From contig JAAPAO010000136.1 of the NCBI GenBank assembly GCA_013115145.1, positions 2,280 to 66,279 of the forward strand: 64,000 bases of DNA, given 5' to 3'. The notes under the pieces were generated by a model, which worked only from the letters and a program-made list of their open reading frames with translations, was not told the origin of the DNA and made no database searches. The DNA comes from Perkinsus chesapeaki ATCC PRA-425. Lineage: Eukaryota; Protista; Perkinsozoa. Below, piece by piece: positions 8,810 through 39,351 of this stretch. Each line of letters begins with the position of its first letter. Position 1 is the stretch's first letter. The position numbers and the translations under genes are program-made.

Positions 8810-10735
8810 CTAGCGAGGATATCGTGGATTTGTTTTAGTAATAAAGTAATTTATAGCAGTACAGGTAGCATCCCCTGCTCCGGTGCTTGAAGCCATCCTA
8901 ACAGCCATTTGGGCGCTTGTCATCTTCTTCCTGCTGCCATCTTCTTTCTCGCCGAATTTAACACCTCCCAGCCAATGTGGTACTTCTCGCATAACGTTTC
9001 TGATTGATACGCGGATCGGCATTTCGCCTTTAGAGATGCTTGCTTGTGATTTTCCCAGATAATAAACAATGGATGTAAGGCAGGTAGTTAGTAATTTATC
9101 GGATCCATCTTTGACTGCTGACTGGCTGAAGTACTTATTAAACTTCTTAAGTCGGACACCACTCTCAGACCTGAACCAGATTTTGAAACCCCACAGAGTC
9201 GCACGGAGATCTCACTTTACTGGTAGCTGTGCCAACTCAAATTTATCAACGAGTCTATTGATACGATGTACTTGTATATCTTTCATAGTTGTACTTTCCT
9301 GAGCACACACCAGAGGTTTCCTTCCAAGCTGACTATCTTTTCGTTGGAGTTTCAACTCTGGCTGAACTGTCAGGGTGCAGGTATCGATATCCGCTCCTTG
9401 GCCCTGAAATTTAAGGTTCGAACAACCACTAAGGTAGGTGAGCTTACCATGGAGTTAAGTTGACTTGCGAAGTTAACAAGGGCGAGTATAGACCTTCCGA
9501 CTGGGTCTTCAGCATCGCGGCTGGTTTGTCGAGAGGCTTTTTTATTCTTCTTCCCCTCGATAGAAGCAAGCTCCTTTTTGCGCAACTCATCTTGCTTCAT
9601 CAAATCCTCTGCGCCAAGAGGCTTGCCTAGCTGTAGGCCAGTAACAATGGATCCATGAAACAGGTATTTCGCGAGCAAAGCATGGCAGGTTTTTGGCTCG
9701 ACCTTTTCCGCTGGAGTGTCGATGGTGTTCCCGGCAGCATCTAGCAAAACCGAGAGCTCTTTTCTGATAGGGACGACTTCACTGAAGTGCATCACTAATG
9801 ATTTGCGTGCTATTCATTCTCCGTACTCGTTCCTCCTCAAGGATAGTCTCTGTACACGTTTACCGAGTATTTTTAACTCTTCTATACCGGCCTCGTAGGT
9901 ATGATCAAACAAAGTGGCTTTCACATGGCACTTGCCCCTGTATTCGCCTTCTTCCTGAGATAATCGAGATTATATGTCTTTTCCGGATTATACATCACTT
10001 TCAAGCTCATCCACGACTTCTTAGCTAGTTTAAGAGCTCTTGATAATTCCTACCACGACATCTTGAGTATGCTTGGTGATATGGCAAGGCTTCTCTACCT
10101 CTTTCGTGTGTTTAGTTGTGATGAGTCCACGATCGCCAACAATGTAAGCTTGCCCTTGGGCCAACCCTGCCAGGTCTTCAACACCGGTAGAGACCGCTCC
10201 ATGTGCTGAGAATGTCTTCCCGGAAGGTTTGTTCCGCGTTTGCTCGTTGAAATTCGAGTGTACCGTGTGCACCCAATCAGTAAGCATCATCGGTATAGTA
10301 AGAGCCGTTTTGAGTGCAGCGGAGCCGGCAAGAGTTCTATAAATGACATCGAGGCAGGGGTTATCGCCTGAGATTTGGGGTATGGGCTTGACCAGAGTTT
10401 CGACAAAGTCGAGGTTAATATCAATTCTGAAGTGGAAGCAGAACATGGATAAACAGTACTGCAGTGGTTCTCACCTTCCGTTGTTGGTTGTGATCGCCAT
10501 ACCGCTTTCCATATCCAACGCTACTTCACATTCGCCAAGAAATCGAGTCTTCGCTGAGATGGCGCATACCCACGGGGAAGGGGAAATAGACTGATTCGAA
10601 GGTGTTCCTCTGCGAAAGGCAACATCGTACTAAAGAATCTTCATCACTGCTGTCAATGGACGATGCACTGTGTACTGCAGAGGATGGCGCGATCATAGTG
10701 GCCGCGATGAATGAACACAGGCATATCACCTTCAT
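8810..10735 (-). CDS. Secreted modular family member F (hypothetical; probably extends 3' below 8810)
   Basis: Signal-peptide-like start MKVICLCSFIAATMIAPSSA. Later exons contain AKTRFLGECEVALDMESG..INLDF, DNPCLDVIYRTL, KTCHALLAKYLF and TTCLTSIVYYLGK, which resemble motifs in genes A and B. The frame join near 10560-10600 is unresolved. Confidence 0.6.
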
Positions 10736-11191
10736 TGAAAAGTTTGTGAACACCTGGACAACTAATGGAAATAAAGGTGCGTCCCCCCGTGACGTGACGT
10801 GCTGTTTGATGAGTACCATCAATGTGTTAATCATACCCTATCATTCGTAATATAGCGTATAGTCTGATCAATATGAGGTGTTTGTGGCCCAGTGTAATGG
10901 ACAGCCGTCAAGGTCACAGTCGACAAAGAATAGTCTTAATTTTATAATAGATAAGCTTCGGTTGCGTGCTTGAAAAGTCCAAAGGCAAGCCACCGCCTCT
11001 TCTGCCTTTTTGTTGGTAAATATACTTCACGAAGCGTCCCTCGATTCGAACACAGCACCGGAGCTACGAACAGCGTGACAACATCGACATCGAACATCAT
11101 GTGGTTGACCAATAAGCTCAACTTGGTGATATATTTGAAGAGGGGTCAACCTATATATAAGATAAGGGCGTTTCACTGATAGACTCGCTTA

Positions 11192-14100
11192 CTAATATCT
11201 GCAATATCCGAGAGCCTTGCCAAGAACGGAGTCTTCCGGTATGCGGAATATCATCCCGCCATCCTCCACGCCTGCTCGTATCGTCCTAATCTGATTATAC
11301 GCCGCATCTGCGTCTACATCCCTCGCTTTGTTCAGCTTTGAGAATGAGACAAGGTAGTCGACGAGGGTAAGCCGGCATAAATCCTTCGTGTCGAGTGTCC
11401 CGTCCTGGAAAGAACCAAGCGTGAAGTGAGGGGCAATTCGTTTCGAAAGTTGTTTGATAGCTCCGTCATCTGTAATGATTGAACTGAAGTGAGGATGATG
11501 CTCAGGAGTGCCGCAGGAGCAAGTGAGGAATTACTCTCCATTTCTTATCGAATAAATGGTAAAATCGGCCCCGAGTGTTAAGGAATGCTTCGGCTCGTCT
11601 TCTCCAGATTCTCTGGTCAACAAAGTTGCAAGTGTGCATGCACCACCATCACTTGGCTGAAGAGGTACAGTAAGAACGACATGAGCAGTTCGCAGCCCCT
11701 CACCTCCCACGCCATCGTTCTCCCATTACGGCCAGAATCTTTGTTGTCCTTCAACCACCGTTGGTCACGAATCAACCCACTGGACTTGATGATAAAACCA
11801 GATAAACTAGACTCATCAACAACATATTCGTTTCCCATTTTTCGCCATTTCTTCTCCCTAACTTCCGCTTCAATTTTCTGGGATACGCGTTTAGTAAGAC
11901 CAGCGTTGCCGGAATCACGGCGAGACATCCAAGATCTGACCAGTACATCTTGAAGCCTTTCACCGCACTTTAACGTTCTAGTATTCTTGGCGATTGGAGG
12001 GTTTTGAGCTTCCAGCCTCGAGCTTATTTCACGGTGAAGCAACCTGCGATGATGAGGTCAACATAGGGCCTCATTGAAAGCTTTGCAGTGGGCTGTCAGC
12101 ATCACTTACACTTTAATCGGTGTGGCTGTCGTGCTCCCGGAGATCACAACGCCGCCTGTCGCGGTAGAGGTAAACTTATATACCCGTGCAAGGGAATCTG
12201 CCTCCGCTTTAATATTGCAATCTTGTTCCTGATGAGAATGAGATATGATAAGAAGGTGATGGATCGTCCTCACCGATTCCATAGCAACCTCATATATGTT
12301 TTTCAGCGAGCTGGAAATGACACCTCCATCATTTTGGACATGAAATCTAACTTCATTGTCGCCGTCTGGAGTAGCAACGCCCGCAGTAGTAGAGGCCTCG
12401 GGAGCAGGAGTCTTCAGAAGTCCTAGGCTCTCTAGCATAGTCTCATCATCATCATCCTCATTCGTGGCAGCAGTCAAGTACAAAAGAAGAGCGCGCTTGC
12501 AGAACTCGACCTTCGGGGAATCTTTTAGTGGCTCCTGCTGCCAACTTGACAGGCGTGAGACTTCTTCAAATCGACCAAGTATAAAGTCCGAAAATTTCTC
12601 GCTTCCTCGACCGGTACTGAAACGTGACAGGCAGATGTGACTCGTTAGGGAACTTTTGCTACTATTCTGGGCCGGTGATTTCTTGAATACCGAAGTGCGA
12701 TGCTAGTTTCAGAGCAACCTGACCTTTGCCTTTCGTCCGCCCTGCCTGCATTTCTATACTGCATGCCGATGAACCCTGAAGATGTATGACAGATTATGAT
12801 GTGTTGTACGGTCGCTCCATCTCACCGATCTGGCCCGAGCTCCCCAATTCGTCGAAGAGAACGACGGGACGATGACGCTGCCGTCTGCTGCTGTCTCGGC
12901 GACCGTCCAGGAGATTTCGCTCTGTCGTTCCGCCACAGTCTTCTCTAGGATGTCCCAAGCAAGTGTTGAAGGCGCCAGAAGATATACTGATAGCTCCGGT
13001 ATCGGCTTGGACCAGGAGGATTCATCTTTCATCTCGGTCTCAATATATTCCTTTAACATCGACCTCAGGATCTCCATTGCTCGATTGGTTGTCTTTGGAC
13101 GATTCTGCCATTCTTTCAACAGAAAATCGCCAAGGTATTTCTGGCAGGTTGAAAGTTCCGAGGGGGTGCTCTCGATATCGACATCCGGTGTGGAAGATGT
13201 TTCGTCGTCTGGCGAGTCTTTCCTGATAGCAATCAGAGCAACGTCCTGTCAGTTACGGCCTGCTGTATCGTTACTGAATTATGTGGAGGGATATGCTCAT
13301 TTCGCCAGTTCGCTGGCCATCTTTAAGATTCATAATACGACAAACTCTTTCCCTTGTCTAAAAGTATTAATGATGAAATCCATGACTCAATCTAACACTA
13401 CTGGCAGGGCAATTCCCCAAAGTGGGTCGTCTTGAGCATATCTCATCAACTTAGCATACATTTTCGGTACAAGCTGCTCTCCAAGCGATATCTTTGTCAA
13501 GTCCAGATGGACATAGACCCCAGCTCTTTCATAGCGCTCCTGAGGTTTCCGTACATCAGAGCTCGATAGGATTTTTGGCAGAGGTGTCTCTGCCTCTACT
13601 AGCCCCTTGTTGGGTGGCAGGCTGAGCTGGGTGTACCAAACATAGCATGCGATAGACAGCAAACATTTATCTTCTTTCGTGCCCTCTACCCTCCTTTTCA
13701 AAAACTTAACACATCGCTCTGGTGCATCGGCATATTCTTTCTCCCTTCCTTCCGGGTCCCTTCTATTCATATTAATAGGATACACGTCATTTCTGATAGA
13801 AAAACCGGTTTTTAACATGAAAAGTGGGGTTTTTAGATACAGCGTATAATAACACCGCCCCCATAGCCTTCCAACATGGAAGAGCTTCTCCATGTTATAT
13901 GTGCTCAGCGGAGACTTTTGTAAATGTCTAAGAGGTGGTATCATTTGCTCGTCTCATATGACCCTGCGAGAACTTTTTGTGGTTTCCAAGCTTTTGAGCG
14001 ATTCCAGGCATACTACTTCACAGATCTCAACAAGAGCTTTACGTTCGTAAATATAACAATATTATGAAACTCACCCACAGCGAATCGTTATGAGGGCGGC

Positions 14101-16245
14101 GGCGGCAGAGGAGCTAGTTTATTTTAAGCGTCCCGTACTATCAAATAAAGCCTTTTAGAGAAGATCTCAGAGGCGTACACTAGTCGATCGGTAGAAATGT
14201 ACTGAAGCGTCTAACTTACTCGCCATCGGTTATCATATGTATTTGGGCTAGTCCTTCCGAAGAATACGAATCCTTCATCTCAAAATAATAACTTTTATCA
14301 TTTGATTCCCAAGTTGCTCGACAAGGCATATCCTTACAAGACATAATATAACAATTCAATTACTTTTTAGACTCACCTTCCTTTCTTTAACTGCATTTTC
14401 AAGTTCGAGTAAAGCTTCACCAAGATCGGATCTTTCGTCCACTCTAAAGCTTTTACGATTCTGTTGGCCTTCATCATGTTGTCTGTCTTCCCAATAAATC
14501 ACTTTGTCCATTTCTTTTCCATCCAAATCTTCATAAGATTTTCCCATAACTTCATTTGCATATTTAAGTATTGCACGAAGATGATCAAATATAGCCATAC
14601 GGCAGAGGGTAACATCATCATGTAATGAGGAAGGGTTAATAGAAGATGGTTGGAAATAATGCATCAAATCAATCCTCAGTTTGTTAGGATATTCAACAAA
14701 CGAATTATCACCAAACCTACGAGGACAAGTGTGTGTTACGATAGTAATGGTTACGTAACTACCCAAGTCGTTGAACTTTATGTATTGTAAAATCCTGGTC
14801 AAGTTGTAACTCAAGAAGGCCAAACTGACGGAGTTTGCTTCTTTGCTCGCCCATTTGTGATATCTCACATAACACTGGGTCCTGAGCATGTTTATTAAAC
14901 AGTGAGAAGTCTTTTGCTTACCCTCGAAGGTGGCGCTAAAACATCTAACCTTAACAGGAACTTTTCGGAGTTTCTTTCCATCAAAGAGATCAACTGACTT
15001 CCTAGGAAGGATCCATGCTCAGCCACATATACGCTTTTCTCAAGGGTAACTGAGCTCGCGAGATCTGCTTTCATTCTCGCACCAATAAAGCTCGTCAGCT
15101 TCTTCGTCATGTGTCTTTGGGATAAGTCGGTTATAGTGGGGAGCAGATCGCCAAGCTCATGGTAGCAGCTCTTCCACTTCCTGGTTTTACGTTGAACATT
15201 CTGGATGAGTGTGTGGTAAGAGTGCCTGAAAGAACCCTCAATCGTGAAGAAGAGCTCTGACTCAGCTCCACCGTACTCGCGCTCTCCCTGCATGTCCTGA
15301 AGATAGCTGGTAATTGCACCGAGCAAGACATCTCCTTTTTGGTTGAGGAATATCTGATAGTTATGTTGGTCATCCCCACTTTTGACAATTGTCCCTAAAG
15401 TGCATTTAGAATCCTAAACATGAATAAGCTCGACAATATAATAATGTTATAATTACAGTAAAGTATTCCACACCAGTTGTTGGTTCAAGTGCCACCATAT
15501 ATCCTATAAGCTCACTCAACCCTATCACTGCTGCTTCCATGGTAGTAGACTGTGGGATTTGGAAGCCTCCCTTACGGTCTTCCTTCAGTTCTAGTATCGT
15601 ACTGATTTCATCAAGTACATCCCCAAATGGCCCTCCAGCTCCCAGTGCTGAAGCTGAGGTGCTCGGAGAAGATCCATCTTCGGAGTTAACCAACCGTCTT
15701 TTACTCGATGACGATGGCGAGGCAGCGTATGATGCTTCCTGTACGTCGACATCTGCTTTCAGTAGTTTTCTGATCTCTCCGTTCGCCCTATTCGAAGTCC
15801 TCCACAAGTATCCAGCTTTGAGATGAGAAGCCATGCTTTGTAAGCACTCGGCCTTAGCGAGCGATTTAGGACTGCCCTCCCCGGTAGTGGGTGATAGCTC
15901 GAGGATAACTCTTTGAATCTCATTAAAGGCGACCGATGGGCCAGTCGGCCGCATACGGTAGCTGAGCCTGAATAGGGCAGCCGGGGCGTGATATGAAAAA
16001 CATTGTGAATGTTACTGGCTGTTGGTGTAGAAATCCAATTCAAATGTTCCCACACCTTCCTCAAAGTCAAAGAGATACTCCTTTTCAATAACTTTATATT
16101 TAGCTGTGCACTTCTTAACCTTTTTATTGCCAATCTGAGTAATAACAATTCATTCAAGATTAATTGTGATAATTGTTACCATTCGAGAAGTTGATAATAC
16201 CTCGACACCCAATGCCAGTAATATTAAATGACAAGTGTACAACAT
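11192..16245 (-). CDS. Secreted modular family member A (large multi-exon hypothetical protein)
   Basis: Starts MLYTCHLILLALGVEVLSTSRM (signal peptide). GT-AG introns link ORFs 15406, 14895, 14356, 13387, 12754, 12106 and 11617. C-terminal exon reads DLCRLTLVDYLVSF...SVLGKAL. One splice join near 13270 appears 1 nt out of phase. Confidence 0.72.
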
Positions 16246-16329
16246 GGATTAAAAGGTAACAGCTATCATAAAGAATAACTTCCTATTGTCGAAGGGAGGG
16301 TTAAACACGAAGGACATCATCTTCATGAT

Positions 16330-17500
16330 CGCCGCAGGTGTTTCACTGATGAAGAAGACGTATGGCGTAAGCTACAGTTTGGAAGATTTCTAAAGGAGAT
16401 GATCAACATAAATCCCGCTTGAACATACATCATCGAATCAGCAGCAACAATAAACGAACAGAGGCTGTTTCTGGGATCCACTTTACGGGCCTCGAGACTG
16501 TGTTTACGCTGATGTAGTCTGCGTCAAGCTGCTAGGTATCCATCCTAGGTGTAAGTATATTTTGAACGGAATGAGGGCTCCACTGTAGGTAAGGTAACTT
16601 CTTCAGATTCGGTCCTGTGGAAAACCGACTGGTGAAGCCTTTAATGAATCTAATATCCTTCCTCCGCTGCGTAAGTTCCCGATCAGCTACAATGGTAACC
16701 GTAAAAAACTTGACGCTTGACAGCATTAGAATTTCAACACTTCCTCTTAAATTGGGTAGCGATATTGATGAGATGGAGGACGCCAATAGCAGATGGCTTC
16801 TCAAGCCGGGCCCCCAAAATGTTTATACGGTAATATCTTCGTGCACATTCCCGAGCGGCCGTCACGAGGCTCGAATCGGCTATCTCTGACTCCTCTGTCC
16901 AATACTCTCTATTGTGAGCAAACACTCTGTCGCCGATGCATCATCCACTAATGGCCAAGCCCACCGAGGTACCCAATGAATGCAGCCTGAGCATCAGCAC
17001 CATCTTCGAATTCTATCAGCTTCTTAATGGCAATATCCATGCCTGGCCACGACACTTATCCAAGAGAAATATGATAACAAAAGCAGCACGAACACGAGGT
17101 GGTAAAAGTCTAATTGCAAAAGTTACCGGGACACGGTAAGCGGGTATCCACTATTGACAGTCACATTTTGAATGGACAAAGGGCAACGTCCCTTTCCCGA
17201 ATATGGATGGTTCGAGGAGTGAGGTGACTACACTGAAGTCTCTGTTAAAGTCAAAGTTTGAGCGCTTGTGCTCTTTAACAGCCCAGTGCTCTTTATGATA
17301 TTGAAAGTAGCGAGAGGAGGTTGAAGGATCAGACCGCCTAGCATCAATCTTCGGATATAGCCCAGCTCTCCGCGAAAGCCGCTGCTTTCACTGAATCTTC
17401 GAACTGCCGAACAGACTTCAGCGAAGCGTCTCCGCAATTTGATAACAAAAGTTAAAACAGTTGAACTCCTGTTGTATCACATCTCAAGACCTTGAAGTGG
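16330..17500 (-). pseudogene. Disrupted secreted-family member E (pseudogene or sequencing-error-broken gene)
   Basis: Minus strand about 16950-17060 reads SWPGMDIAIKKLIEFEDGADAQAAFIGYLGGLGH*, aligning with gene C EEWGGMWNAIGELESFKEG...AKAAFIGYLSGFCH. Similarity resumes in another frame (IGDRVF..YWTEESEI). Confidence 0.5.
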
Positions 17501-17541
17501 AATAGCCCGCTGCAGGTTAAAAGACTTCCTAAGCAGCGCAT

Positions 17542-17903
17542 ACACTGGCAATTACAGTATAACATACATCACACTGGCAATTACAGTATAACATACATCA
17601 CACTGGCAATTACAGTATAACATACATCACACTGGCAATTACAGTATAACATACATCACACTGGCAATTACAGTATAACATACATCACACTGGCAATTAC
17701 AGTATAACATACATCACACTGGCAATTACAGTNNNNNNNNNNNNNNNNNNNNNNNNNNNNNNNNNNNNNNNNNNNNNNNNNNNNNNNNNNNNNNNNNNNN
17801 NNNNNNNNNNNNNNNNNNNNNNNNNNNNNNCTGGCAATTACAGTATAACATACATCACACTGGCAATTACAGTATAACATACATCACACTGGCAATTACA
17901 GTA
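17542..17903. repeat. 29-bp tandem minisatellite (ACTGGCAATTACAGTATAACATACATCAC)n spanning an assembly gap
   Basis: Identical units with period 29 (starts 17544, 17573, ...) on both sides of the N run; true copy number unknown. Confidence 0.97.
17733..17830. other. Assembly gap (98 N)
   Basis: Run of N characters. Confidence 1.
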
Positions 17904-18143
17904 GATCAATGAAACAGCAGCACGAACAAGGGAACAAGGAATATTTATAGGATCCACTTTAGCGGCTTTCAGATTATCTTTATGGTAATCCAATAGTAAA
18001 GAATTGACAACTCAACAATAAGGGATAGAAGCTTATCAAACCCCAGGGCGATCGACTATCACAAAAAGGGTACCACGCTTCAGCGCAGGATTGCTGTATA
18101 CTCCCATTTTAGGAGTGTGCAATAATAACAATTATCATCGGCA

Positions 18144-18858
18144 TCAACGCCTGTGCTCGAAAACACGGCCAGTATAAGACGAACGCTTCACTTCTTCAGA
18201 GCCCCTTGGTTTGAAGGACAAACTGGTACCATTAACACAATGCCGTTCGTCTGTAGCATATCTGATAGAAAAAGCGTAGAAACAGTGCCTAGATACGAAG
18301 CCAAGCTCACCCCATGCCTTCGCCGCGGAACACATGGCCGAGATGTGAGCCACATTTAGAACAAAGTATTTCAATACGACCAGAACCATCAGTCTCCATA
18401 CGTTCTGCAACAGCATCGTCGATGTTAGTCCAATAACCCGGCCACCCACAACCGCAATCGAACTTATGACTCGAATCGTATCTGGTAGAGTAAGTGTAAG
18501 TCTCCGTATCATCGGTTATATCTGAGCTATAGGCTGATTACAGTGGTGTATCACAAGCACCACAAAGATAAGTGCCATCAGCAAAGTTATCATCCCATCC
18601 ACCTTTTGCCATAGTTATACCGCGAGGCTCGGTAGCAGCTTCCCTGAGGACCTAAGTTAATGCTATATTCATGATGAAAATTAACTCTTGTCATTGATGC
18701 ACCTTGAATTGTGTAGGAGTGAGCCTCTCTTTGAAATAATCATCGCCTTTATCCAATGTACCATCAATTTGAAGAGAAGTCTTACTGCATGCTAGTCGAC
18801 CGTTTACACTACTACTCATTGATCGAATGGGGAAGAGTGAAAATAAACGCTTAAGCAT
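18144..18858 (-). CDS. msrB: Peptide methionine-R-sulfoxide reductase MsrB (Zn-binding, Cys-type), probable organellar targeting
   Basis: Exons read YFKERLTPTQFK|VLREAATEPR..GTYLCGACDTPL|YDSSHKFDCGCGWPGY..EILCSKCGSHLGHVFRGEG|ATDERHCVNGTSLSF. N-terminus MLKRLFSLFPIRSMSS resembles a transit peptide. Confidence 0.95.
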
Positions 18859-19236
18859 AAACTGACACGAATACTTGATCATGACATCATAGCCCTTTGC
18901 CAATTTACCTACTGATGGCTACTAGATAGCACGCACACGCACACAACCGGAGTCGGCGTGCTCAACCGGCTGAAGCACCTCACTCATTGATGACATCAAT
19001 TTCACCAGACATCTCCCTTGACTTCGTGATTGAATACACAATACAAGAGAGATCTTGAATTGAGCTGATTACCCCTGACTTGGTCGTTTTCGAGAGGTAC
19101 ATTGTAAACTCAAAGCTAAGCTGAACAGTAACACAGCCATCTTAACATAAGCACATGTGTACGTACACCTTGGAGAGTTGTCTTCACTTATCCCAACAGT
19201 TAATAAAAACAACAGCAACAATGAGAGCAATTCCAT

Positions 19237-22200
19237 TTAGCTGGCCATTTCTGCAGTCATTTCTGCGAGACCTTTAAGTGCCTCGCCAAGGAGAGTAACC
19301 CCGGGAAGAAGGGTAAATACGACCGAGTCATTCTCGATTTCCTCCTTCCTTGCTTTTCTGGCCTCCTCGTAAGATTTTGTAATATTTGGTAACTTACGAG
19401 GCGATTGTAGCATTTGGAAAGCAATAAGATATTCGCAGAGTGTCAGTCGACACACTTCATCGATTTCAGTCGCAAGCACTGGATGAATCTTGCTAAGATG
19501 AGGACCTAGACGGTTCCAAACTGGGTTGATGAATTCCAGCTCGGTTATAACAGAACTAAAAGGAACAACATGTACAATGGGGATCGCACGGCAGCTTAGC
19601 ACATCCACGCTTACTCGTCGCTCCTTATCGATAAAATCACGAGATCGCTCCGAAGTGTGAGTGAATACTTGGGGACTGTCCCACCTGGCTTTCTAGGCTC
19701 CGCCGATGCCATGGTACAGAGTCCACGATTCTCCTGAGTCATGGAGTTAGCGCGATCAAGACTCTTCCACTCACTTCAACCCAGTTCGATCCAGCATTCC
19801 GGCGAGCTTTCTCCTCCCTTATCGCCGAGGCTCTGTCATGTGCCATTCCAACAGTCTTCATTATGAAATCAGACAATGTGTTCTTTCTAACGAGGGCTTC
19901 CCGCTTATCCGATGACTTCCACTTTCCCTCCCCAATCTCTATCTGCATCTTCTGCACCACTCGAAGAAAAAGGTACACATTGACAATATGAATGGTCTCT
20001 CTCCATTTTTGTACAAGAGTGTCACGAAGCCTTGTGTGACACGTGAAGGAGGGAGTAGTAAAGCTGGTTGGTCGTCTAAAGTACCAAGATGAGAAAGCCC
20101 CCAAATGAATTAGTTATTTGCTTACATTTTCGCAAGCTCAATACTTCCTCGGTTCGTGGTGAGTACGACGATGCCAGAGGGAGTAGAGGTGAATACATAC
20201 GTCTGAATGTAGGCGTTGCATTCCCTTTTGATACTGCATTCTCGAACCTTGGCTCAAGATCTTACACCAGATAATGATGACCATTTACCTACCGATTCCA
20301 TTGCAAGTTCATTCAGCCTTGTAAGTGAAGTAGATACGATACCACCATCATCAACAATATTCAACTTCACCGTCCCATCCTCGGAAGCTGTACTAGTTCG
20401 GAGCGCCCTCCAAGCAGCCTTATCGAAAGGTTCCGCTTCAGCCGGGAGGAGCTTCTCCTCGTTGTAAATATTGAGGGCGGCACCCATATACCGTAGAAGA
20501 CTGAGCTTGCATAACTCTACAAATGGAGCCTCCTTTGGTGTCTCTGAAGGAACGGTTATCTGCTGGTAGCTTTCTCCAAGGCGAGTGAAGAGATATTTCA
20601 TGAATCTATCGCTCCCTCGACCGGTACTAAGAAAAAGTTAACCGATAAGGAAAGCGACGGAAACATGTTTTACTATTCCGGCCCAGCGGTTTCCCGGATG
20701 ACGAAGTCTGATGTCAAACTTAAAGTGAATGTCCGAGCCCGAGGATATCTAACTTCTACGCTGCAAGTCGACGATGCCTAAAGTAATAAAATGTGATGTG
20801 TCAAAGTAGACTTGATGTCATCTTACCAGGCTCTTAGTGAGCGAAGTGTGCCAGTGTGTCAGAGAGAACTCACCGGTGAGGAGACTACCGTCACTGGCAG
20901 TCTCGGCAACTATCCAAGATTTCTCAGCGTCGTCCTCCACTAATGTGCTCAAAAGCCTCAAGGCAATCGCCGATGGTGTTATGAAATAGACTGAGCGGTC
21001 CACTACTGGTTTAAACCAGATAGATGAATCTTTCATCTCAGCCGTTATATACTCCAGGAGCATCGGTTTCAGACTCGGTAGTGCAGCGCCTTTCATTTCG
21101 TTGGACAGACTGTGTTCCCATGCCTTTAGCAAGTACTCGAGAAGATATCTCTGACAGAGATTGACATCAGATGCTTCGTCCTCGAACTCAAGGAAGGAGT
21201 CATCATCCCAATCACCATCCTCGTGAAGGACTGAATCACCACCCTTCCCCGAGCCGGCTACTCTGAGCGATGATACATCGATGACGAACGGAGTAATAAT
21301 TACTCTAAAGACAAAACGAGTTCACTGATTTGGATGCTATTGGCTTCCTTCAAGGCCGCAATGCGACACGATCTTTCAAGTGCCTGCACACGGTGATAGG
21401 TCTAGTGGTAGCTTGAAGATATTACTGGCAACGATATCGCCCAGTATGGATTATCTTGTGCGTTTTTCAACAGTTTGGAATGCATAGTCGGTATCGTGCT
21501 TTGCCAGACCAACATGTTCGTTGAGTCGAGACCAACGGCCCCTTCGCTATATTTGTGATCCCGTGAAGTGTATGAGCTCTTAAGGGCTTCGAACACGCTC
21601 GGCAGACTCTTCTCCGCCACTACCAGTCTGTGGTCACTCCGAGGCGCATCAGTTTGAAAATAGAAAAGATAACATGCGATAGAAAGAATGCATTTCTCGT
21701 CTTCGGTGGTTATCTTTATCGTCTTAGCAAACTGTTGGCAGCGAGCCAATACGTCAGAGTATCTTGGTAGCCTCGTCAAACCTCTTCTGTCAGCCATGAA
21801 AGGATAGACATCGGTTCTGATGGAAAAAGGATCTTCTACGCGTCGGTGAGCGCGGAAGGCCGAGTTATCAAAAATACGAATATGATGGTACTACTACTGC
21901 AGGACTACTGATGAAGCGTCTAACTTACTCGCCATCGGTTATCATATGTATTTGGGCTAGTCCTTCCGGAGAATACGAATCCTTCATCTCAAAATAATAA
22001 CTTTTATCATTTGATTCCCAAGTTGCTCGACAAGGCATATCCTTACAAGACATAATATAACAATTCAATTACTTTTTAAACTCACCTTCCTTTCTTTAAC
22101 TGCATTTTCAAGTTCGAGTAAAGCTTTACCAAGATCGGATCTTTCGTCCACTCTAAAGCTTTTACGATTCTGTTGGCCTTCATCATGTTGTCTGTCTTCC

Positions 22201-24535
22201 CAATAAATCACTTTGTCCATTTCTTTTCCATCCAAATCTTTATAAGATTTTCCCATAACTTCATTTGCGTATTTGAGTATTGCACGAAGATGATCAAATA
22301 TAGCCATACGGCAGAGGGTAACATCATCATGTAATGAGGAAGGGTTAATAGGAGATGGTTGGAAATAATGCATCAAATCAATCCCCAGTTTGTTAGGATA
22401 TTCAATAAATGAATTATCACCAACCCTACAGAAATAGGTATGTGTTACGATAGTAATGGTTACGTAACTACCCAAATCGTTGAACTTTATGTATTTTAAA
22501 ATCCTGGTCAAGTTGTAACTCAAGTTTGCTCTCTTCGTTGCCCATCTGTGATATCTCACATAATACTGGATCCTGAGCATGTTCATAATACAATACTAAT
22601 GCTTCATTTCCCTACCCTTGGGGGCGGTGTTATAACGTTCGACATAGGCAAGTCGTCGAAGTTAATCCTCATAAGGGTTACCAGCTGCTCCCCCAGGAAA
22701 GATTCGCTCTCCACCATGAATACGTTCAGGTCGGATGCGGGTAAGCTGCTGATGTCCGTTCTCGTCTTGGCGCCAATAAGACCCATCAACTTCCGTGTCA
22801 TGTACTGTTGAGAGAGCTCCATAGCTGCGACTATGCTGTCCATTAGCTCTCTTTTGCAACTTTTCTTTTTCTTCTTCCGACGTGAAGTATTCTCGGCGTG
22901 CTTGAGGGTATGGGAGAAAGCCCTGAGAGAGGGCACTTGGTTGTCGACAAGGATTCCGACAAAGCAACTGTACGGGCTTAGAAGGTTGCGCCTTACTCGG
23001 CTTGGGAGTTCTGAACGGATCTGGTAATTGCACCGAGCAAGACATCTCCTTGTTGGTTGAGGAATATCTGATAGTTATGTTGGTCATCCCCACTTTTGAC
23101 AATTGTCCCTAAAGTGCATTTAGAATCCTAAACATGAATAAGCTCGACTATATAATAATGTTATCATTACAGTAAAGTATTCCACACCAGTTGTTGGTTC
23201 AAGTGCCACCATATATCCTATAAGCTCACTCAACCCTATCACTGCTGCTTCCATGGTAGTAGACTGTGGGATTTGGAAGCCTCCCTTACGGTCTTCCTTC
23301 AGTTCTAGTATTGTATTAAATTCGTGTTCCGTCGACGGAACCGAGAGTAACGAGTATGATGATTTCGATGATAGGGACGAAGATGATGATGATCTTTGTA
23401 AGGAAGGGGAGGATGATCTTCGTGAGGCTTGGGAGGATGACATGCGCGATGATGATGATGATGATCTTTGTAAGGAAGGGGAGGATGATCTTCGTGAGGC
23501 GGGGGAGGATGACATGCGCGATGATGATGATGATGATGACTGCAGTGATTCTTGGGATATTCCATCTCCTTTTATTAACTCCTTAATTTCCTCATTCACA
23601 GGTAAAGCCTTCCAATAGTATCCAGTGGTAATATGGATCAGTATGGCCTGTAAACACCTGTTTCTTGGTGACTTAGGATTATCCTCCAAATCCATGGGCC
23701 AGACCGCATTGACAAGTTCTTTAATCTTGCTAAGAATGGCTGAGAAGCCCTTCATCACGCGGTAGTTGATTCTGAACAAGTCATTACCCGATCCAGTTGA
23801 CAGTGGATCGTGGGACTCCATCTTAAAATATATGTTACTATCAACGTTTACCGATGAATACGACACCAATTTAAGTACATACAGTCTCGTCACAAAATTG
23901 TCCCGCGCCGATCTGAATAGGTTTCTGATAGGGTACTGTATAAAAATAAAGTTGGTACTAGCAATCAACCACAAATTTCCAGCCCAACACAGAGGTGTAG
24001 AACTCATCATCCCGCGACCTCTGACTTCCGAGATATCCAGTTTTAGGGAAGCTAACGCCCGCCAAACTTTTACCTTGGAATTTTTCATGTTCATTTGAGA
24101 ACACCAAAAATTCATTATTTTGCCCTATCGAAAACCTATTCACCGGGACAATTCTTTGCCAGACTGTATCATAGGGGGCGCTCAGTAATATACTGTATCT
24201 TACACGAATATGCGGCGCGCAAGAATGAACTGCAGCTAACGTGCGACCTCAAAACGGCCACTCAAAAGAAACTAGTGCTTATAAATGATTGAAACAAAAT
24301 CTTACTGGCTGTTGGTGTGGGAATCCAATTCAAATGTTCCCACACCTTCCTTAAATTCAAAGAGGTACTCCTTTCCCATAACTTTATATTTAGCTGTGCA
24401 CTTCTTAACCTTTTTATTGCCAATCTGAGTAATAACAATTCATTCAAGACTAACTGTGATAATTGTTACCATTCGAGAAGTTGATAATACCTCGACACCC
24501 AATGCCAGTAATATTAGGTGACAAGTGTACAACAT
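19237..24535 (-). CDS. Secreted modular family member B (paralog of A)
   Basis: Same N-terminus as A (MLYTCHLILLALGVEVLSTSRM). Collinear exons 23120, 22604, 22065, 21402, 20818, 20254, 19739 and 19237 match A exon by exon. C-terminal exon has EVCRLTLCEYLIAF and TLLGEAL. Confidence 0.78.
23382..23538 (-). repeat. 72-bp intragenic duplication plus (GAT)n tracts encoding a Ser/Arg-rich linker in gene B
   Basis: GATCTTTGTAAGGAAGGGGAGGATGATCTTCGTGAGGC recurs at 23391 and 23463. Encodes SSSSSSRMSSS[PQ]ASRRSSSPSLQR twice. Confidence 0.9.
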
Positions 24536-24790
24536 GGATTAAAAGGTAACAACAACAACTACCAAAAGGAATGTGAATCTCTACATGCCTCGGAGTAACG
24601 CTTTGACTACCTCAGGAATCCTTAGTATTTCAAAACACAGGTAGAGCAAATGAAAGTGGACCGACGCAGCACCGTCTACGTTTCTAAATGGCTTGGGTTT
24701 AGCGCTGCTAGTGTTGGAAGTAACACTGCCGGTCATCTCTTTGCTATAATTGATCAGCCCGGATATGTCGCCATACTTACTGTAGATGCT

Positions 24791-25156
24791 CTAAAGATAC
24801 GAAAGAAGTGCTATTTCATAGAAAATGTTAAGATCATTCGTTATTCCGATTACCATGATCGGTATCCAAACGGACGTATTGCTCAATACGTGCAGCCTGC
24901 ACGGTGCAGGCAAAGGCGAATTAAGGTACGCGATCGGCATATGGATGGTGCGATGAGCGGTTCCCTGATACACTATATTCAATAGAAGTGCCCTATTTCG
25001 CCTATCCGCTGAGAACCGAACCATTCGGTTACCATTCAAACGTGAATTGCGATATACAATCGAATCGGTAGCGTTGACGAGACTGTCCTTAAAGTGAATA
25101 GGAGGACCCGTCAAAAAATAGCTCGACGACGAGAGGATGGCGAAAACGCAAAGCAC
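24791..25156 (-). CDS. Hypothetical protein fragment
   Basis: 121-aa ORF with a hydrophobic start and no recognisable motif; no in-frame ATG found. Confidence 0.25.
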   Translation of the reverse strand: MLCVFAILSSSSYFLTGPPIHFKDSLVNATDSIVYRNSRLNGNRMVRFSADRRNRALLLNIVYQGTAHRTIHMPIAYLNSPLPAPCRLHVLSNTSVWIPIMVIGITNDLNIFYEIALLSYL

Positions 25157-25320
25157 AGAGGCAGTTATAACATCATTATTAATACATCACATATCACAAT
25201 CATGGAAAACACACGCTTTTAAACATATTGTTAATACTTGATAGACATGAAAAAGATGAGATTAATTCATCATGCACATATAAATAAGCAACAGTGCCCT
25301 CGCCACCGAGCAGCAGCAGC

Positions 25321-27854
25321 TCAATCCTTCTGCAGGTACTTCATCAGATCTTCGAATGCCATCGCGAGTGGTTTATCCTTTCCCGATGCTATCTCGAATG
25401 TCGCCTCTCCGATGCTGTACATTTCCTTCTCATCGGTTATCTTCGACCAGAGGGGCTTGGTCCTCATCACTTCACTGTTACAGCGATCATACACATACTT
25501 GCCCAGATTATAGGTTATCTGCCCGTTCTTGTCCTCTTTACTGCGCTGAACAATATGGCAGAAACCACTGAGATAACCGATGAATGCAGCCTTGGCGATT
25601 CCCGCCGACGATGCAGGTAAGTCTCCCGCGGGACCTTCTTTGAAGCTTTCCAGCTCGCCAATCGCGTTCCACATGCCTCCCCACTCCTCTGGCCTGATGA
25701 GAAGATGACTAACCACTATTACGACTGGAAATAATAGTGAACACTTAATTTCGTCGACTATCCCTTCGCAAATACAAATCCGGGCAAACAGGTTTCGCGG
25801 AAGGATCCAGGGGGGCATGTTTCTTCATGTGAGAGGGTTATGGTCAATAACTTACTCGTTAGGGAGGCGAATGGTACGGGGAGTGAAGTCCCTTTTCAAC
25901 TCGAGGGAATACTCTGTACCGGCTAAGTTGAAGTACCAGGTATCATCCTAAAAACATTTTAGAAATAATGAAACCTACAATGTGTTAAACTAACCTGGTC
26001 TCGAGGAAGTATTGCTATCTGTGGTCGATTACTACCAGCCAGAATATCGGCAGCAGCTTGGAGGAGAATGTCCCCAGCGAGTGACGATGGTAGATGGAAG
26101 GTTGATGGAGTGGCGAAAGATTCCCAGTGTTCAGCGTCAAGCCTCAGCTGCTCCGCGATTTCGTCCTCGAAGGCTGCTGTATCGAGGTGGTCCGAACTTA
26201 TATGATTCCAAACATAAAGCAAAAGCTCCTCAATGTTCCTTGTACAGTTTTCTTTTGGGTTATCTTTCGATAGTAGTGCTTCCGGCATACCAAATTGAAC
26301 CAGCACATCAGGTTTGATGATAGCTTTACGGATACTGAAACAGAAGGACATTGCCCCCAAACATGCATTGTCAACAACAATAGCTTACTTCATATCTTTA
26401 CCACCTTCCTTGAACTTATAGTAAATCTTAGCACCATCTTCGCTCATAGCCATTTCATACATAACATCAGTTTTGCCATTATGAGTGGTGAATGCTGTGA
26501 AGACTCGACATTGAGATATCTGAACAGGTGGATTCATGTATCCGATAAAGCACCAAGGTCGCACATCTGCCTGCAGCATGTTCTCATAATGCGATACATC
26601 CTTCCGAATGCTCATGGGGAACTGAGGATGCCCCTCTTGAGAGGAGGAGGATGACCTTCGTGGAGGAGGAGGGGGCGGGCGGGAAGACCGTTCACCAGGA
26701 GACTGTGGAGAGGGAGATCTCGACCTCTCTTTAGAAGGAGACCTTTGCGGGGGAGGAGACCTCGGCGGAGGCGGGGGCGGTGGGGAGACCTGCCCACCTG
26801 ATGGCTGTGGAGAGGGAGATCTCGACCTCTCTTTAGAAGGAGACCTTTGCGGGGGAGGAGACCTCGGCGGGGGCGGTGGAAAGTCCTTTGGGGATCGAGG
26901 AGTAGGAGGGGTCCTATCAGGCCTTGGCGCTGGTAGAGGAGGTCGACCAGATCTACCAGCACCTGGTGAAGGGGACCTCGGTGGCATGACCAGTGGTGAT
27001 GGCACCGGCTCCGAGGAAGGCTGAAGGGGCCCATTAGCCTCCGGTTGGGGCTCTGGCTCAGCAATAACCGACTTTAGATCAAGTGTGTCCTGAGCAGCAG
27101 AAGCGACGGAGTAACTGTAATGCTGACGAGAGTAGCATCTTACAGGGCGATTTGCCCTCTTCTTCGGGAGTGATGCTCGACTCTTCTTTTCAGGCAGCGG
27201 CGGTTTTGCCTACGAACAACCAACTATTGTGAGGTGATAAACCGATATAGAAGACATTGCCAGAACACTATGTAAATTACGCAACTAGGAATGGGCGAGG
27301 AGGATCGAGCAGCAGCCTCACCACGTCCAGTGCGGGGTTGTTAAACACGGAGGGGGTCTTTTTCTTAATGGGGAGCTCTGGGGCCTCATCAATCTCCGCT
27401 TCAGGCTGCTGGGCTCCTTCAAATACCTTTCTTCGTGCTTCCAGTTTTCGACTAACCTCATCACTTGCACCGCCATCAACACGGAATCCCGCACGAGTCT
27501 GAAAGACACTCGAATGTAGCCTAGCCATCATTAGTGCTGATTCTGCTGCTGCCCACCGGAGCGGCCGGCGGCGACCCTCCTTCCCCTGCCGTCGTTCGGG
27601 CTAGCCTGAACCCTCTTGGCTGAAAGCAAGCGAGAAATCATATGGGATCGAGAATCAAGAGAGTGAATCGAGAAGGCAAAACTCACTAATGAAGGCTTCG
27701 GCGGAGGAACAGGTGATCCCTGAAAATATAAGACTAGAAGCTGGTTGTGGCACCATTCCCTTACACTCCTCCCCTTGGTGGAACTCGAACTATGAAGAGC
27801 TAGAACATAGCCACCAGACAGCGCGAAGGCTGCTGCTACCTTAAGAGGATACAT
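25321..27854 (-). CDS. Secreted modular family member C with Pro/Ser/Arg-rich linker
   Basis: Signal-like MYPLKVAAAFALSGGYVLA, a Pro-rich region (ORF 26385), then PWC..QCRVFTAFTTHNGKTDVMYEM, ENCTRNIEELLLYVW and AKAAFIGYLSGF in successive exons. Confidence 0.7.
26703..26878 (-). repeat. 102-bp-period intragenic duplication encoding PPPPPRSPPPQRSPSKERSRSPSPQ twice
   Basis: CTGTGGAGAGGGAGATCTCGACCTCTCTTTAGAAGGAGACCTTTGCGGGGGAGGAGACCTCGGCGG recurs at 26703 and 26805. Confidence 0.9.
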
Positions 27855-28103
27855 AGTGCGTTGAAAGATACGAAAAGGGATAATATCACCCCAGCCGTTT
27901 CCAAGGTTAACAAACACGGAACCAGAACGTTTACACAACAACAGCAACAACATTTTCCCACATCACCACGTCTCCATGGGAACAACGTAACATTGAAATA
28001 TAAAGATATTATTAAGGATTGATTATCTGCGATTTTTTGGGGGGTAACGGAGGAGGAACAACATCGTTCAGCAGGACGCTTTGTGATACTCTTTCTACCT
28101 GAG

Positions 28104-29483
28104 TTAAGCTCGATTTCGCGCTATAATGTGCCCTACATGTGCTTTAATAAAGGATCCCATTTCGGTGAGCGTTTTTGCCGCTTGAGAACCTTTCTCAATA
28201 GTAAAGTACCCCCGAGCCCCTTTGATATCATCCTCTCTATAAACACCTACATCTTTGCCTTGACTTTGAAGGAACCCCACCAAGTATTCGACAAATGTTT
28301 GCTTGCAAAATGTATCAACCAGATGATGAAGAGGCGCGTCCTCACTGGGGTCGGCAATACCGGATGCGGGTTTCTGAGGATAGTACCCACGTAGAAGTTG
28401 GGTAGATGTTTGCACATCGGAGGAATATTGGCTCCTACGACATGATGGTTAACAGGACGGTGTTACTTCCCTACCACATATTTGACTCTATCGATTGTAT
28501 GGTAAAATCATAACCAAGATTAAGTGTTAGCGGTTTCTGGAGGCTTGTCTGAGGTAAACTGAAGGAACACTTCGGATACTAAGAATGACCTTGTTGAAGA
28601 CCTTCTCCATATAGCCGATCATGATAGATGCTGTTAAAGATGTTCCAGTGACACTGTATGATTGTATACGGTCCGATGTCTGTACTTGAGTCCACACATG
28701 TTTGTACTCTTTATCAAGCTGTGCATGCACCCTTGGTGTTAGCCTCTCTTGAACATTGCCAATATGGGGTTCACTATAGATCATATAATTGGTCCACGCT
28801 TCACCTTTAAGCGCGTTAAGAAGCTCCCTGTGACAGTCATCTGCTAGAGTCTGATCCCTCAATAGGATGCCTTTCTTTGATTCTCCCCTATTAGTCGTAA
28901 TATAAGCCTTCACATCGTCATTCCCAGTTGTTGGATTCACTTTAACCGACATTTCATAGACCTGGTCCAAGTCTCCCCGATAATTGTACAGACGACACTT
29001 CGGACCCTGAAACGACCCGATAAAGTGTGGTGGCAGTGTAGCTTCGAACCCCTTTGTCGCCCTGGTATCTTAGCTTACCGCATGCATAAAGGATAGATCT
29101 TTGATTCTACCCTAGGATGATAACTATCATCTGTGAAGTACAAATTAATCAATTTTAATCATTTCATCCGAACCACTAAGATTCAAATCCATTCTGAACA
29201 TGCTCTGGCGTCGTATAATATAACTCTTCCTGCTGATGCCCCACACTTACTATCGATAAGAGATTTCGTGGAGGGATGGCCGCAGATGGAGGCACTACAC
29301 GATCCAGATCTTCAGCGGTTATTGGCGCTCGTTTCTGTGGTAATGGCACGTATCTTGCGTCATCCTGTTAAAGATATTTTCAAGCTCAGCTTTGAAGCAT
29401 TTACTCACCTCGCCGGGGGAAGCTGATAGGGATGCTGAAAGCAAGCCTAATGCTAGAAGAAGAGCAGCAGTGATCTGTATCAT
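28104..29483 (-). CDS. Secreted modular family member D
   Basis: Signal-like first exon MIQITAALLLALGLLSASLSASPGE|gtgagt. Later exons read IYPLCMP|GPKCRLYNYRGDLDQVYEM, DDCHRELLNALKGEAW and DTFCKQTFVEYLVGF. Confidence 0.7.
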
Positions 29484-37445: not shown

Positions 37446-39110
37446 TCACCAAGGCAGCATGTGAAAGTTTTCTATTCTAACTGTACCTAGTCGTAAACCA
37501 TCTGACAGCTTAACAGCATTAATAGCTTTGGTGGCATTATCAGTGAGACCGACTGGACCGCATAAGAAGAAATGAACGTGTGTTATCTTCTCCTCGGCCA
37601 CTCGACCAATGGATGATTGAATGAATCGTTCGAGCTGTTTGGCATCCGGTATAGAATGATTATCAAGATAGGTTAGAAATGGTACACCAGTACTGCCACT
37701 TGATTCACCAGTAGAAGAGAACTCGTCCTCTGCATCATCTAAGAAGAATGAGGCAACCTTCTGTGTGTTACAACCAGAGTAGATCAAACGCTTCTGGTGA
37801 ACTTCGTTAATGAGAGGATAGATAACATTCAACGAGTCGGCATTATAAAAGTGCCAAAGCACGGACACAGATGATCGAATGATTGATTTAGGGAATCCCT
37901 GAATATTAGAGGCTACTGGTGCCACTCCCGTACCACCACAGATAAAAATGCAATACGATTTATGGTAAGTTAGTTGCCTCGGTAAATCATTTACACCATA
38001 TGGTCCTTGAACCATGACAGTCTTTCCTATAATGGCATTTGAAGGAGAACCAAGCAATCTACGAGTCATTAAGCCTTTACCAGAAATTAGGAAATGAATA
38101 ATTCCATCAGAAGTAGATGGTAGAGTAGAATAAGCATGAGCCATTATATCCATACCTGGTAGGAATAAGTATACCCATTGCCCGGGTGATGGTTTTATTG
38201 GACAACGTACACTCAACATACAAGCAGTTGGACCTCTACTCGTATCATCACTCAACGGCTTTAACGCCTCTATTCTGCAACAGAATGGATTGGAACATTC
38301 GTCATCAGCTTTAGTGGACCGTTTAGTACCAAGCCATTGTCTCATAGCAACATAGAGCTCTCGCAGTCTCTCGAGGAAACTCAGCCCAAGACACATGATG
38401 AAGACAATTGAGGTGACCCGCACAGCGGCAGAGTACCACTCCGAGAAGATGGTGTCCCAAACATACAAATGATAAGCAAACATAGTCGATGCAGGATAGA
38501 CTAACCAGTGCGTAAGACGGAAAATGCGATAGCCACATGGGTACAGACGGTATACTGTAGCAAATAGGAGAGAGAGGAGTAGAAGACCACAGCCTATGGC
38601 CGCTTCAAGCCCCCCGTTTTTCAGAACTTCTCGCGCGGAGCTTTCGAAATAAAACGGCAGAATGCCATGGACAATACCAGCCAGAAGGGCAATGATACCA
38701 AGAACACCATGAATGATTATCACCTTCTCTAGGCCAATTTTGAGAAAGTGAGAGACGGGACGTAATGAGAGGAAAAGGGTCACAATCATTGACCAGGCCG
38801 CCATGCGGCCAAGTACTACGCAGACAACCACAATAGGTCCTAGAGTGGTGGGATATGTGGATAGCTGGATAACCGCGGCCAGAGTCAATGCCCCAAGTAT
38901 CAGAGTAAAGCTCAAACAAATGCCCTTGCTAGGGAAGACAAACCTGCAAGGCCGCTTGAGGCAGAAGGGGATGTATTTTCGTAGTCCAGTGGCAAGGAGT
39001 ACAACGACAAGGGTGAGCAGAGTGCACACAGCAAAAGATAACTGTGCGATTACAGGGAAGGTTAAAGCCATATTGTTGAGTAAGGCGAAAAACTGCGTTG
39101 GATATGCCAT
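37446..39110 (-). CDS. Ferric reductase / NOX-family transmembrane flavocytochrome, copy 1 (intronless; ATG 39071 matches copy 2)
   Basis: Heme His pairs IIIHGVLGIIALLAGIVHG (H-x13-H) and THWLVYPASTMFAYH (H-x12-H), FAD motif HAYS, NAD(P)H motifs VQGPYG, CGGTGVAP, FLCGP and terminal ENF. Confidence 0.9.
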   Translation of the reverse strand: MAYPTQFFALLNNMALTFPVIAQLSFAVCTLLTLVVVLLATGLRKYIPFCLKRPCRFVFPSKGICLSFTLILGALTLAAVIQLSTYPTTLGPIVVVCVVLGRMAAWSMIVTLFLSLRPVSHFLKIGLEKVIIIHGVLGIIALLAGIVHGILPFYFESSAREVLKNGGLEAAIGCGLLLLSLLFATVYRLYPCGYRIFRLTHWLVYPASTMFAYHLYVWDTIFSEWYSAAVRVTSIVFIMCLGLSFLERLRELYVAMRQWLGTKRSTKADDECSNPFCCRIEALKPLSDDTSRGPTACMLSVRCPIKPSPGQWVYLFLPGMDIMAHAYSTLPSTSDGIIHFLISGKGLMTRRLLGSPSNAIIGKTVMVQGPYGVNDLPRQLTYHKSYCIFICGGTGVAPVASNIQGFPKSIIRSSVSVLWHFYNADSLNVIYPLINEVHQKRLIYSGCNTQKVASFFLDDAEDEFSSTGESSGSTGVPFLTYLDNHSIPDAKQLERFIQSSIGRVAEEKITHVHFFLCGPVGLTDNATKAINAVKLSDGLRLGTVRIENFHMLPW

Positions 39111-39351
39111 GTTGCTGGAAGGCTCTGCCGCCTTCCTGAACCCGGAAAGTTGGCGACTTCAATCGGTCGATACACAGAAGTTCAAGAACACTCGGAAAAT
39201 TAACATTGAAATGGCCGCACGCATGCGCATAGCTACATTCTTGCTAAGAGAAACGTGGCCCCATAGTGTACTCTGTTCATTGTCGAGCACGAAATATGAG
39301 AAGGGCATTGCTTCACAATAGTGCAGATTTTTCTCACCTCCATTCAACATC

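Follow-up and report, generated by a model that had tools for sequence, protein, structure and literature searches.

A Perkinsus locus of probably secreted proteins built from a repeated two-cysteine domain carried by a frame-neutral exon pair

Perkinsus species are lethal to clams and oysters, yet only a small number of the proteins they secrete have been studied in any detail. A stretch of 64,000 nucleotides from Perkinsus chesapeaki ATCC PRA-425 (positions 2,280 to 66,279 of the 66,279-bp contig JAAPAO010000136.1, nearly all of which it covers; hereafter the window, in whose coordinates all positions are given) raises the question of whether a group of genes at 8810-29483 forms a single family of modular secreted proteins and, if so, what its modules are. 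A first-pass annotation, made from the letters of the window, had proposed at this place a cluster of six co-oriented, unannotated secreted paralogs (F, A, E, B, C and D) assembled from several recurring cysteine-anchored modules. Five genes of the locus (F, A, B, C and D) are intact and one copy (E) is dead, all on the minus strand, and the bounds of the locus correspond exactly to the stop of F (8810) and the ATG of D (29483). Judged from their sequences, at least four of the five intact genes are strings of a previously undescribed, predicted two-cysteine domain of ~150 residues. We hold the structural and evolutionary description of the family with considerable confidence and, on balance, we favour the reading that the five intact genes and the decayed E form a family confined to Perkinsus, whose modular proteins bear signal peptides and are probably secreted.

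The exon structure gives the first part of the answer. According to the predicted junctions of the GenBank exon maps, intron phases alternate strictly between 0 and 2 in A (eight units), B and F (three units), and each unit of ~150 residues consists of a mini-exon (~40 residues; 28-46 codons), a phase-2 intron, a large exon (~110-130 residues; 101-170 codons) and a phase-0 intron, as exemplified by A unit 3 (Table 1). The same grammar recurs in both modelled units of C and in D unit 2 as modelled, D unit 1 being encoded by a single exon; the C and D exon structures were modelled in this analysis, homology searches were run exon by exon or with database proteins, and only homology-backed exons are reported. 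The exon pair is bounded by phase 0 on both sides and is therefore frame-neutral, so that its tandem duplication does not break the reading frame, which explains the arrays and makes of this locus a clean example of domain arrays growing through frame-neutral exon-pair duplication. The several modules previously suspected in the long genes amount to eight in A, eight in B and three in F, whereas C and D, which had been credited with about one, carry two each.

The cysteines give the second part. Two types alternate along the database proteins of the family (P0001-P0004), the strand cysteine being separated from the helix cysteine by 48-77 residues: the first type opens strand 1 of the domain (e.g. 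KCTAKYKV, PCRATWES, LCEISQMG) and the second opens its long helix, within the motif C-x3-[LIF]-x-[DE]-[YH]-L. Over an alignment of 28 units the helix cysteine is invariant and the strand cysteine is present in at least 90%, and the two-cysteine pattern recurs in every unit of A, in the seven units that the GenBank model gives to B, in F, in C unit 1 and in D unit 1. C unit 2 lacks both canonical cysteines in P. chesapeaki and in Perkinsus olseni and displays another conserved cysteine pair instead; such a loss of both together is to be expected of disulfide partners, and we infer that the strand-1 and long-helix cysteines would form one disulfide per unit. The 16 motif strings quoted by the first-pass annotation were all found in the minus-strand genes where they were expected, including CRLTLVDYL in A (11351-11377), CRLTLCEYL in B (19426-19452), CKQTFVEYL in D (28281-28307), AKAAFIGYL in C (25570-25596), AQAAFIGYL in E (16966-16992) and TCLTSIVYY in F (9059-9085). 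The three motifs into which they had been sorted are not separate modules but parts of one domain, the KC/CR...Y-[EQ]-[MI] motif corresponding to the strand hairpin, and the C-x3-[FLI]-x-[DE]-[YH]-L and CL-x-SI-x2-Y motifs both corresponding to the helix start.

The paralogy of A and B extends to every exon (30-100% identity, E 1e-6 to 1e-118 in an all-versus-all comparison of minus-strand open frames), from a signal-peptide exon encoding identical peptides in both genes to the last exon of A (11483-11195), which is homologous to the C-terminus of B. Profile comparisons within A and B link units 6 and 8 (P=2e-8), 3 and 8 (P=7.6e-6) and 3 and 6 (P=7e-5), units 1 and 4 (P=7e-4), and units 5 and 7 (P=3e-3); a common origin of all eight A/B units is suggested mainly by the exon grammar and the cysteine spacing. 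Three blocks of 254-700 bp are 93-96% identical in DNA between the two genes (Table 1) and outside them blastn finds no match between A and B, a contrast that fits patchy gene conversion. Within these blocks, one intron shows 7 differences over 46 nt and its neighbour 1 over 44 nt. The large exon of B unit 1 (within 23123-24124) also contains a 72-bp tandem repeat (23382-23537, 2.2 copies, 97% matches) encoding a Ser-rich insertion (SSSSSSRMSSS.ASRRSSSPSLQR) which is absent from the homologous exon of A. The splice donor after the mini-exon of B unit 2 is tentative.

The presence of the same unit in C and D was shown, at the level of sequence, by profile-profile comparisons including the P. 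olseni orthologs. The last exon of D matches units 3/6/8 over ~105 columns (P=3.4e-8), the mini-exon of C unit 2 matches these units too (P=1.8e-7), and the large exon of C unit 1 matches the all-unit profile (P=1.2e-5, with shuffle maxima of 12-13); the D mini-exon (P=2.4e-4) and D unit 1 (P=2e-3) also match A/B units. Each of these matches keeps the register of the units, and their scores (20-50) lie above the maxima reached by shuffled controls (9-14). The first weak links had appeared in the all-versus-all comparison of open frames, between the last exons of D and B (E=7e-4) and between the last exon of C and the E remnant (E=1e-3). In C, unit 1 comprises a mini-exon ending at 26389 and a large exon at 26334-25995, and unit 2 a mini-exon at 25947-25856 and a large exon at 25693-25321. 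Its signal-like start, MYPLKVAAAFALSGGYVLALHS, begins at ATG 27854, a further ATG lying upstream at 27953, and its 5' exons are tentative. Between the signal-peptide region and unit 1 lies a Pro/Ser/Arg-rich linker (~26640-27160) with internal repeats (26624-26873; PPPPRSPPPQRSPSKERSRSPSPQ occurs twice). D comprises an optional linker exon (29364-29251), a single-exon unit 1 starting from 29006, and a unit 2 with a mini-exon at 28578-28475 and a large exon at 28434-28104.

E had been counted as a sixth paralog, and on sequence it is the pseudogene remnant of a C-like gene. Its 35-codon open frame (16951-17055) matches the start of the C last exon (P=8.2e-7 against the C last-exon profile) and ends in a stop, and the relic of its mini-exon (~17200-17273) is split over two frames, the halves matching at P=0.014 and 0.011, which indicates a frameshifted and truncated copy. 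No signal-peptide exon, linker or first unit of E was found.

In silico, one unit folds into what is predicted to be a compact alpha/beta domain without detectable relative. From the 28-unit alignment, AlphaFold gave for A unit 3 a model with a predicted local distance difference test (pLDDT) of 84.5 and a predicted template modelling score of 0.83, all five models lying between 80 and 84.5. The order of its elements is b1-b2-b3-a1-a2-a3-b4-a4, namely a three-stranded meander, helices, a fourth strand and a C-terminal helix, with strands at 3-10 (including Cys5), 23-28, 33-38 and 128-133, and helices at 51-58, 74-96 (the long helix, including Cys78), 106-111 and 137-152. With this model, Foldseek found nothing better than E 0.63 in the PDB, VIA-align nothing above Z 3.5 among 48,161 PDB representatives, a search of the ESM Atlas by shape nothing above a template modelling (TM) score of 0.32 and a search of the viral BFVD nothing better than E 0.52; an Atlas feature search gave nothing usable, with chance-level 0.81 at best. 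Concerning sequence, Pfam has no family for the database proteins P0003, P0004 and P0007 at E up to 0.01, in agreement with the first reading of the window, and gives only sub-threshold matches to unrelated families for ten window exons at E up to 0.1. PDB entry 8ypt_A (deposited as "Membrane protein", the SusD/RagB-like label being a guess) matched at E=0.01 and 19 bits over profile positions 66-155 of 168; this was attributed to chance, and the SusD/RagB-like reading was dropped as the entry is absent from the structural matches of the wide VIA search.

The genes had been described as unannotated, which proved incorrect, as GenBank holds two hypothetical proteins, KAF4671508.1 (FOL47_001491, 1824 aa) and KAF4671510.1 (FOL47_001493, 1083 aa), found by an exhaustive protein search with one A exon and then mapped back to the window. 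Both models need correction. FOL47_001491 merges E, A and F: it begins in E, jumps 731 nt to the second exon of A, thereby omitting A's own signal-peptide exon, and exits the last exon of A early through a splice from 11318 to 10753 (564 nt) into F, which forms its 3' part; this early exit entails the loss of the C-terminus common to A and B. FOL47_001493 omits the large exon of B unit 1 and the mini-exon of B unit 2 through a 1383-nt intron, although each of the two has an open reading frame and a homologous exon in A (E=4e-51 and 3e-24). Given that most introns at the locus are 40-66 nt long, A, F and B as separate genes constitute a better reading than the GenBank models, the first of which is a fusion of three genes and the second a model lacking two exons.

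The distribution of the family appears narrow. Searches of the 41.7-Mb assembly with the unit profile, and with the exons of B, C, D and F, brought up no other copy, and protein searches retrieved relatives outside P. chesapeaki only in P. olseni; together with the absence of a Pfam match, this upholds the earlier proposal of a lineage-specific family. An exhaustive search with the A unit-3 exon gave four real relatives, two further matches (P0005 and P0006) being spurious repeat proteins, and a search with P0004 found only itself and P0007. The D main exon and the F unit-2 exon, compared with 5.8 billion proteins, matched nothing within the searched length range. An iterative hidden Markov model (HMM) search drifted and shrank, with the D exon at E=0.001 before inclusion, and was not relied upon. 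In the literature nothing was found on this Perkinsus family.

Comparison with P. olseni suggests how the locus was built. There, the D-like and then the C-like genes come first, followed by several A/B-like genes, msrB and, on the opposite strand, CDC48; both the open frames and this synteny are conserved at 25-45% identity. Copy number varies between the two species and between P. olseni isolates, one of which contains three tandem copies of the C-like gene, annotated as one 1452-residue gene (L006:1988-9556, JABANP010000666.1). Another P. olseni GenBank model (L005:18396-22514) fuses msrB to a family gene. In P. chesapeaki the block E-A-F lies between msrB and CDC48, while in P. olseni msrB follows the family array directly and precedes CDC48; from this position, E+A has the appearance of a C+B duplicate inserted downstream. 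The locus may thus have evolved through exon-pair duplication, gene duplication and patchy gene conversion, the E+A segment being copied from C+B and placed downstream, where E would then have decayed. The earlier idea of a modular family expanding by internal and tandem duplication finds support in the alternation of phases 0 and 2, in the paralogy of A and B over all exons and in the copy-number differences among P. olseni isolates.

Several observations weigh against one family of intact secreted arrays sharing one fold. Within A and B, the links between the unit groups 3/6/8, 1/4 and 5/7 are weak (P 0.01-0.6). The alpha/beta fold comes from one unit type, A unit 3, modelled with an alignment that mixes all unit types, and the model obtained for F unit 2 from an F-only alignment is too poor to judge a fold (pLDDT 39), so that the comparison of modules by AlphaFold and Foldseek suggested earlier yielded a confident unit without PDB relative for A and nothing usable for F. 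The N-terminus of C is weaker than the others (1.71 on the hydrophobicity scale introduced below). The junction between D units 1 and 2 (28475-28700) allows two incompatible splice options and leaves either an odd cysteine or a shortened unit 1: a 41-nt intron retains the last strand and helix of unit 1 and loses the strand cysteine of PKCSFSL, and a 119-nt intron retains this cysteine, whose conserved counterpart in the D-like gene of P. olseni lies in QCSFAVP, and loses the end of unit 1. A 23-nt "intron" would retain everything but is too short; the cause could be a true frameshift, an intron of unusual kind or an indel in the assembly. Two small RNA runs gave no coverage over A, and all splice models are predictions. 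Finally, F units match A/B units at best at P=0.014 in profile-profile (HH) comparison (P=0.014-0.17 over the tests), in 14-18 columns limited to the helix-start motif.

This last point raises the alternative that F is an unrelated orphan secreted gene beside a family consisting of A, B, C, D and the remnant E. Separate HMMs for the individual A exon types matched neither C nor D nor F significantly, and F has no homolog in the P. olseni loci, in protein databases or in the rest of the P. chesapeaki genome, which together with the uninformative structure prediction speaks for an orphan. The grammar of F is nevertheless that of A and B: a signal-peptide exon (ATG 10732, MKVICLCSFIAATMIAPSSAVHS; an in-frame upstream ATG at 10834 is less likely) is followed by three repetitions of mini-exon, phase-2 intron, large exon (109-119 residues) and phase-0 intron, with one extra 17-codon exon before unit 2 and intron phases 0,2,0,0,2,0,2. 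A cysteine opens every F mini-exon and the helix start C-x3-[IL]-x2-[YT]-L occurs ~42-66 residues further on. The HH score of 20.2, in the right register, exceeds all 15 column shuffles (maximum 10.8), and when an HMM of 25 A/B-type units was searched against the 1,326 six-frame open frames of the window, the top six non-training matches were exons of C, D and F, individually reaching only E 0.2-0.7. The first-pass annotation had staked shared ancestry on profile matches between the short and the long genes: these were obtained, significantly and in register, between C and D and the A/B units, and the resemblance of A, B, C, D and E is beyond chance, whereas F is not significantly linked and stands only weakly above chance by sequence. 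On exon grammar, cysteine pattern and position, we consider that the three units of F probably share their origin with those of A and B, an unrelated F being unlikely, if still to be reckoned with.

The same weighing bears on the possibility that the array is mostly decaying, non-functional DNA whose open frames are relics. E is indeed a pseudogene, the D junction is awkward, coverage of A in the RNA runs is nil and the ratio of non-synonymous to synonymous changes (pN/pS) in the recently converted A/B blocks is ~0.56, a value based on few changes (~21.5 non-synonymous and ~9.5 synonymous). Against such a decay, at least 30 A/B exons remain open with intact GT-AG introns and conserved phases, the cysteines and core hydrophobic positions are retained between species despite only 25-45% identity, and the unit alignment yields a confident fold, all of which makes this explanation very improbable.

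As to where the proteins go, signal peptides were scored with a hydrophobicity heuristic, 2.8% of a background of 145 open reading frames reaching 2.6. The N-terminal hydrophobic maxima are 2.60 for A and B, 2.78 for D, 2.76 for F and 2.61 for the database protein P0004, and the P. olseni homologs likewise begin with signal-like peptides. By this heuristic, of the five signal peptides announced earlier, those of A, B, D and F look strongly signal-peptide-like and that of C less so, none having been found for E. The family proteins have no hydrophobic C-terminal tail and no KDEL/HDEL-type end; they would be taken into the secretory pathway and released as soluble molecules of the beads-on-a-string type. 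A signal peptide is in itself evidence of entry into the endoplasmic reticulum (ER) only, and the proteins could stay inside, in the lumen of the ER or Golgi, in secretory organelles or in a relict plastid reached through the ER. In D, a few residues past the predicted cleavage site, the linker exon contains RYVPLP, which loosely resembles the FVAP-type plastid transit motif of dinoflagellates. This string is confined to D, a retention signal of KDEL/HDEL type or a hydrophobic tail is lacking, and one conserved cysteine pair per domain, fast divergence between the two species and variable copy number are typical extracellular traits; intracellular residence accordingly seems to us quite unlikely, and secretion is preferred.

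Signal peptides, one cysteine pair per domain, the lack of an anchor, fast divergence, copy-number change and conversion patches lead us to propose that the family may provide soluble, disulfide-stapled multi-domain proteins at the wall or host interface, acting as binding or structural scaffolds, a possibility to which we give about a third of the weight. More tentatively still, the unit might be a genuinely new single-disulfide alpha/beta fold on a frame-neutral exon pair, building extracellular beads-on-a-string host-interface proteins for adhesion or immune evasion, at a locus reshuffled by exon-pair and gene duplication and by conversion. The locus in any case provides a well-delimited set of candidates, restricted to this lineage, for a role at the wall or host interface; their domain is clearly defined, lends itself to expression and structure determination, and has at present no structural or sequence relative. 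If the domain were merely an ordinary structural component of the wall, its interest would be mainly taxonomic and structural.

The features of the locus are collected in Table 1. The cluster is co-oriented as first described, yet it is interrupted by msrB (methionine sulfoxide reductase B), an unrelated open-frame group on the same strand, 62-92% identical to P. olseni SelR exons; read along the minus strand, the order is B, msrB, a 29-bp repeat, the E remnant and A. An N gap (17733-17830) sits within this perfect tandem repeat of ACACTGGCAATTACAGTATAACATACATC (17542-17732 and 17831-17903, the matches being 100% to either side of the gap). No family exon reaches the gap, and the frame or continuity across it is therefore irrelevant to all gene models. 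Elsewhere in the window, an intronless ferric-reductase/NOX-like gene pair is arranged head-to-head at 37446-40974 (Pfam Ferric_reduct and NAD_binding_6).

Table 1. Position of the genes, remnant, repeat, example unit and A/B identity blocks in the window.
Feature	Position	Strand	Description
Gene F	8810..10732	-	Signal-peptide exon, then three mini-exon/large-exon units; stop 8810-8812
Gene A	11192..16245	-	Signal-peptide exon 16245-16180 (MLYTCHLILLALGVEVLSTSRM), then eight two-exon units; stop 11192-11194
A unit 3 (example unit)	14377..14881	-	Mini-exon 14881-14763, 46-nt phase-2 intron, large exon 14715-14377
E remnant	16951..17273	-	Decayed C-like copy
29-bp tandem repeat with assembly gap	17542..17903	no strand	Non-coding; msrB on one side, E remnant on the other
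msrB (SelR)	18147..18918	-	Pfam PF01641, E=1.5e-17; not a family member
Gene B	19237..24535	-	Signal-peptide exon 24535-24470, then eight units; stop 19237-19239
Gene C	25321..27953	-	Signal-like start, repeat linker, two units
Gene D	28104..29483	-	Signal-peptide exon 29483-29409, two units
A/B block 1 (largest)	A 14203-14901 vs B 21912-22592	-	blastn
A/B block 2	A 15294-15609 vs B 23008-23323	-	blastn
A/B block 3	A 16008-16261 vs B 24298-24551	-	blastn

Two kinds of known systems invite comparison. The beta-beta-beta-alpha-beta-alpha cores of RNase H-like/ASKHA proteins, which headed the Foldseek results without reaching significance, begin with elements in the same order as the predicted unit, a three-stranded meander, a helix, then a strand and a helix. 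Unlike in these proteins, no catalytic acidic residues are conserved across the units, and an RNase H-like fold was rejected (Foldseek E 0.63 at best, TM no higher than 0.23, and no such fold in the VIA results), leaving a topological echo at most. The 6-Cys (s48/45) domains of Plasmodium and the SRS/SAG1-related domains of Toxoplasma are all-beta sandwiches with several disulfides, most members being anchored by glycosylphosphatidylinositol or in the membrane. Membership of the 6-Cys/s48_45 and SRS (SAG1) families was rejected on the lack of a Pfam match, the alpha/beta model and the two cysteines per unit; the Perkinsus unit differs from them by its predicted alpha/beta architecture with four helices, its two conserved cysteines and the absence of a visible anchor signal. 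The likeness to these apicomplexan families is one of evolutionary pattern only: in both cases, lineage-specific families with signal peptides, made of tandem domains of ~120-150 residues stabilised by disulfides (here putative), occur in gene clusters whose copy number is variable and whose sequences diverge fast.

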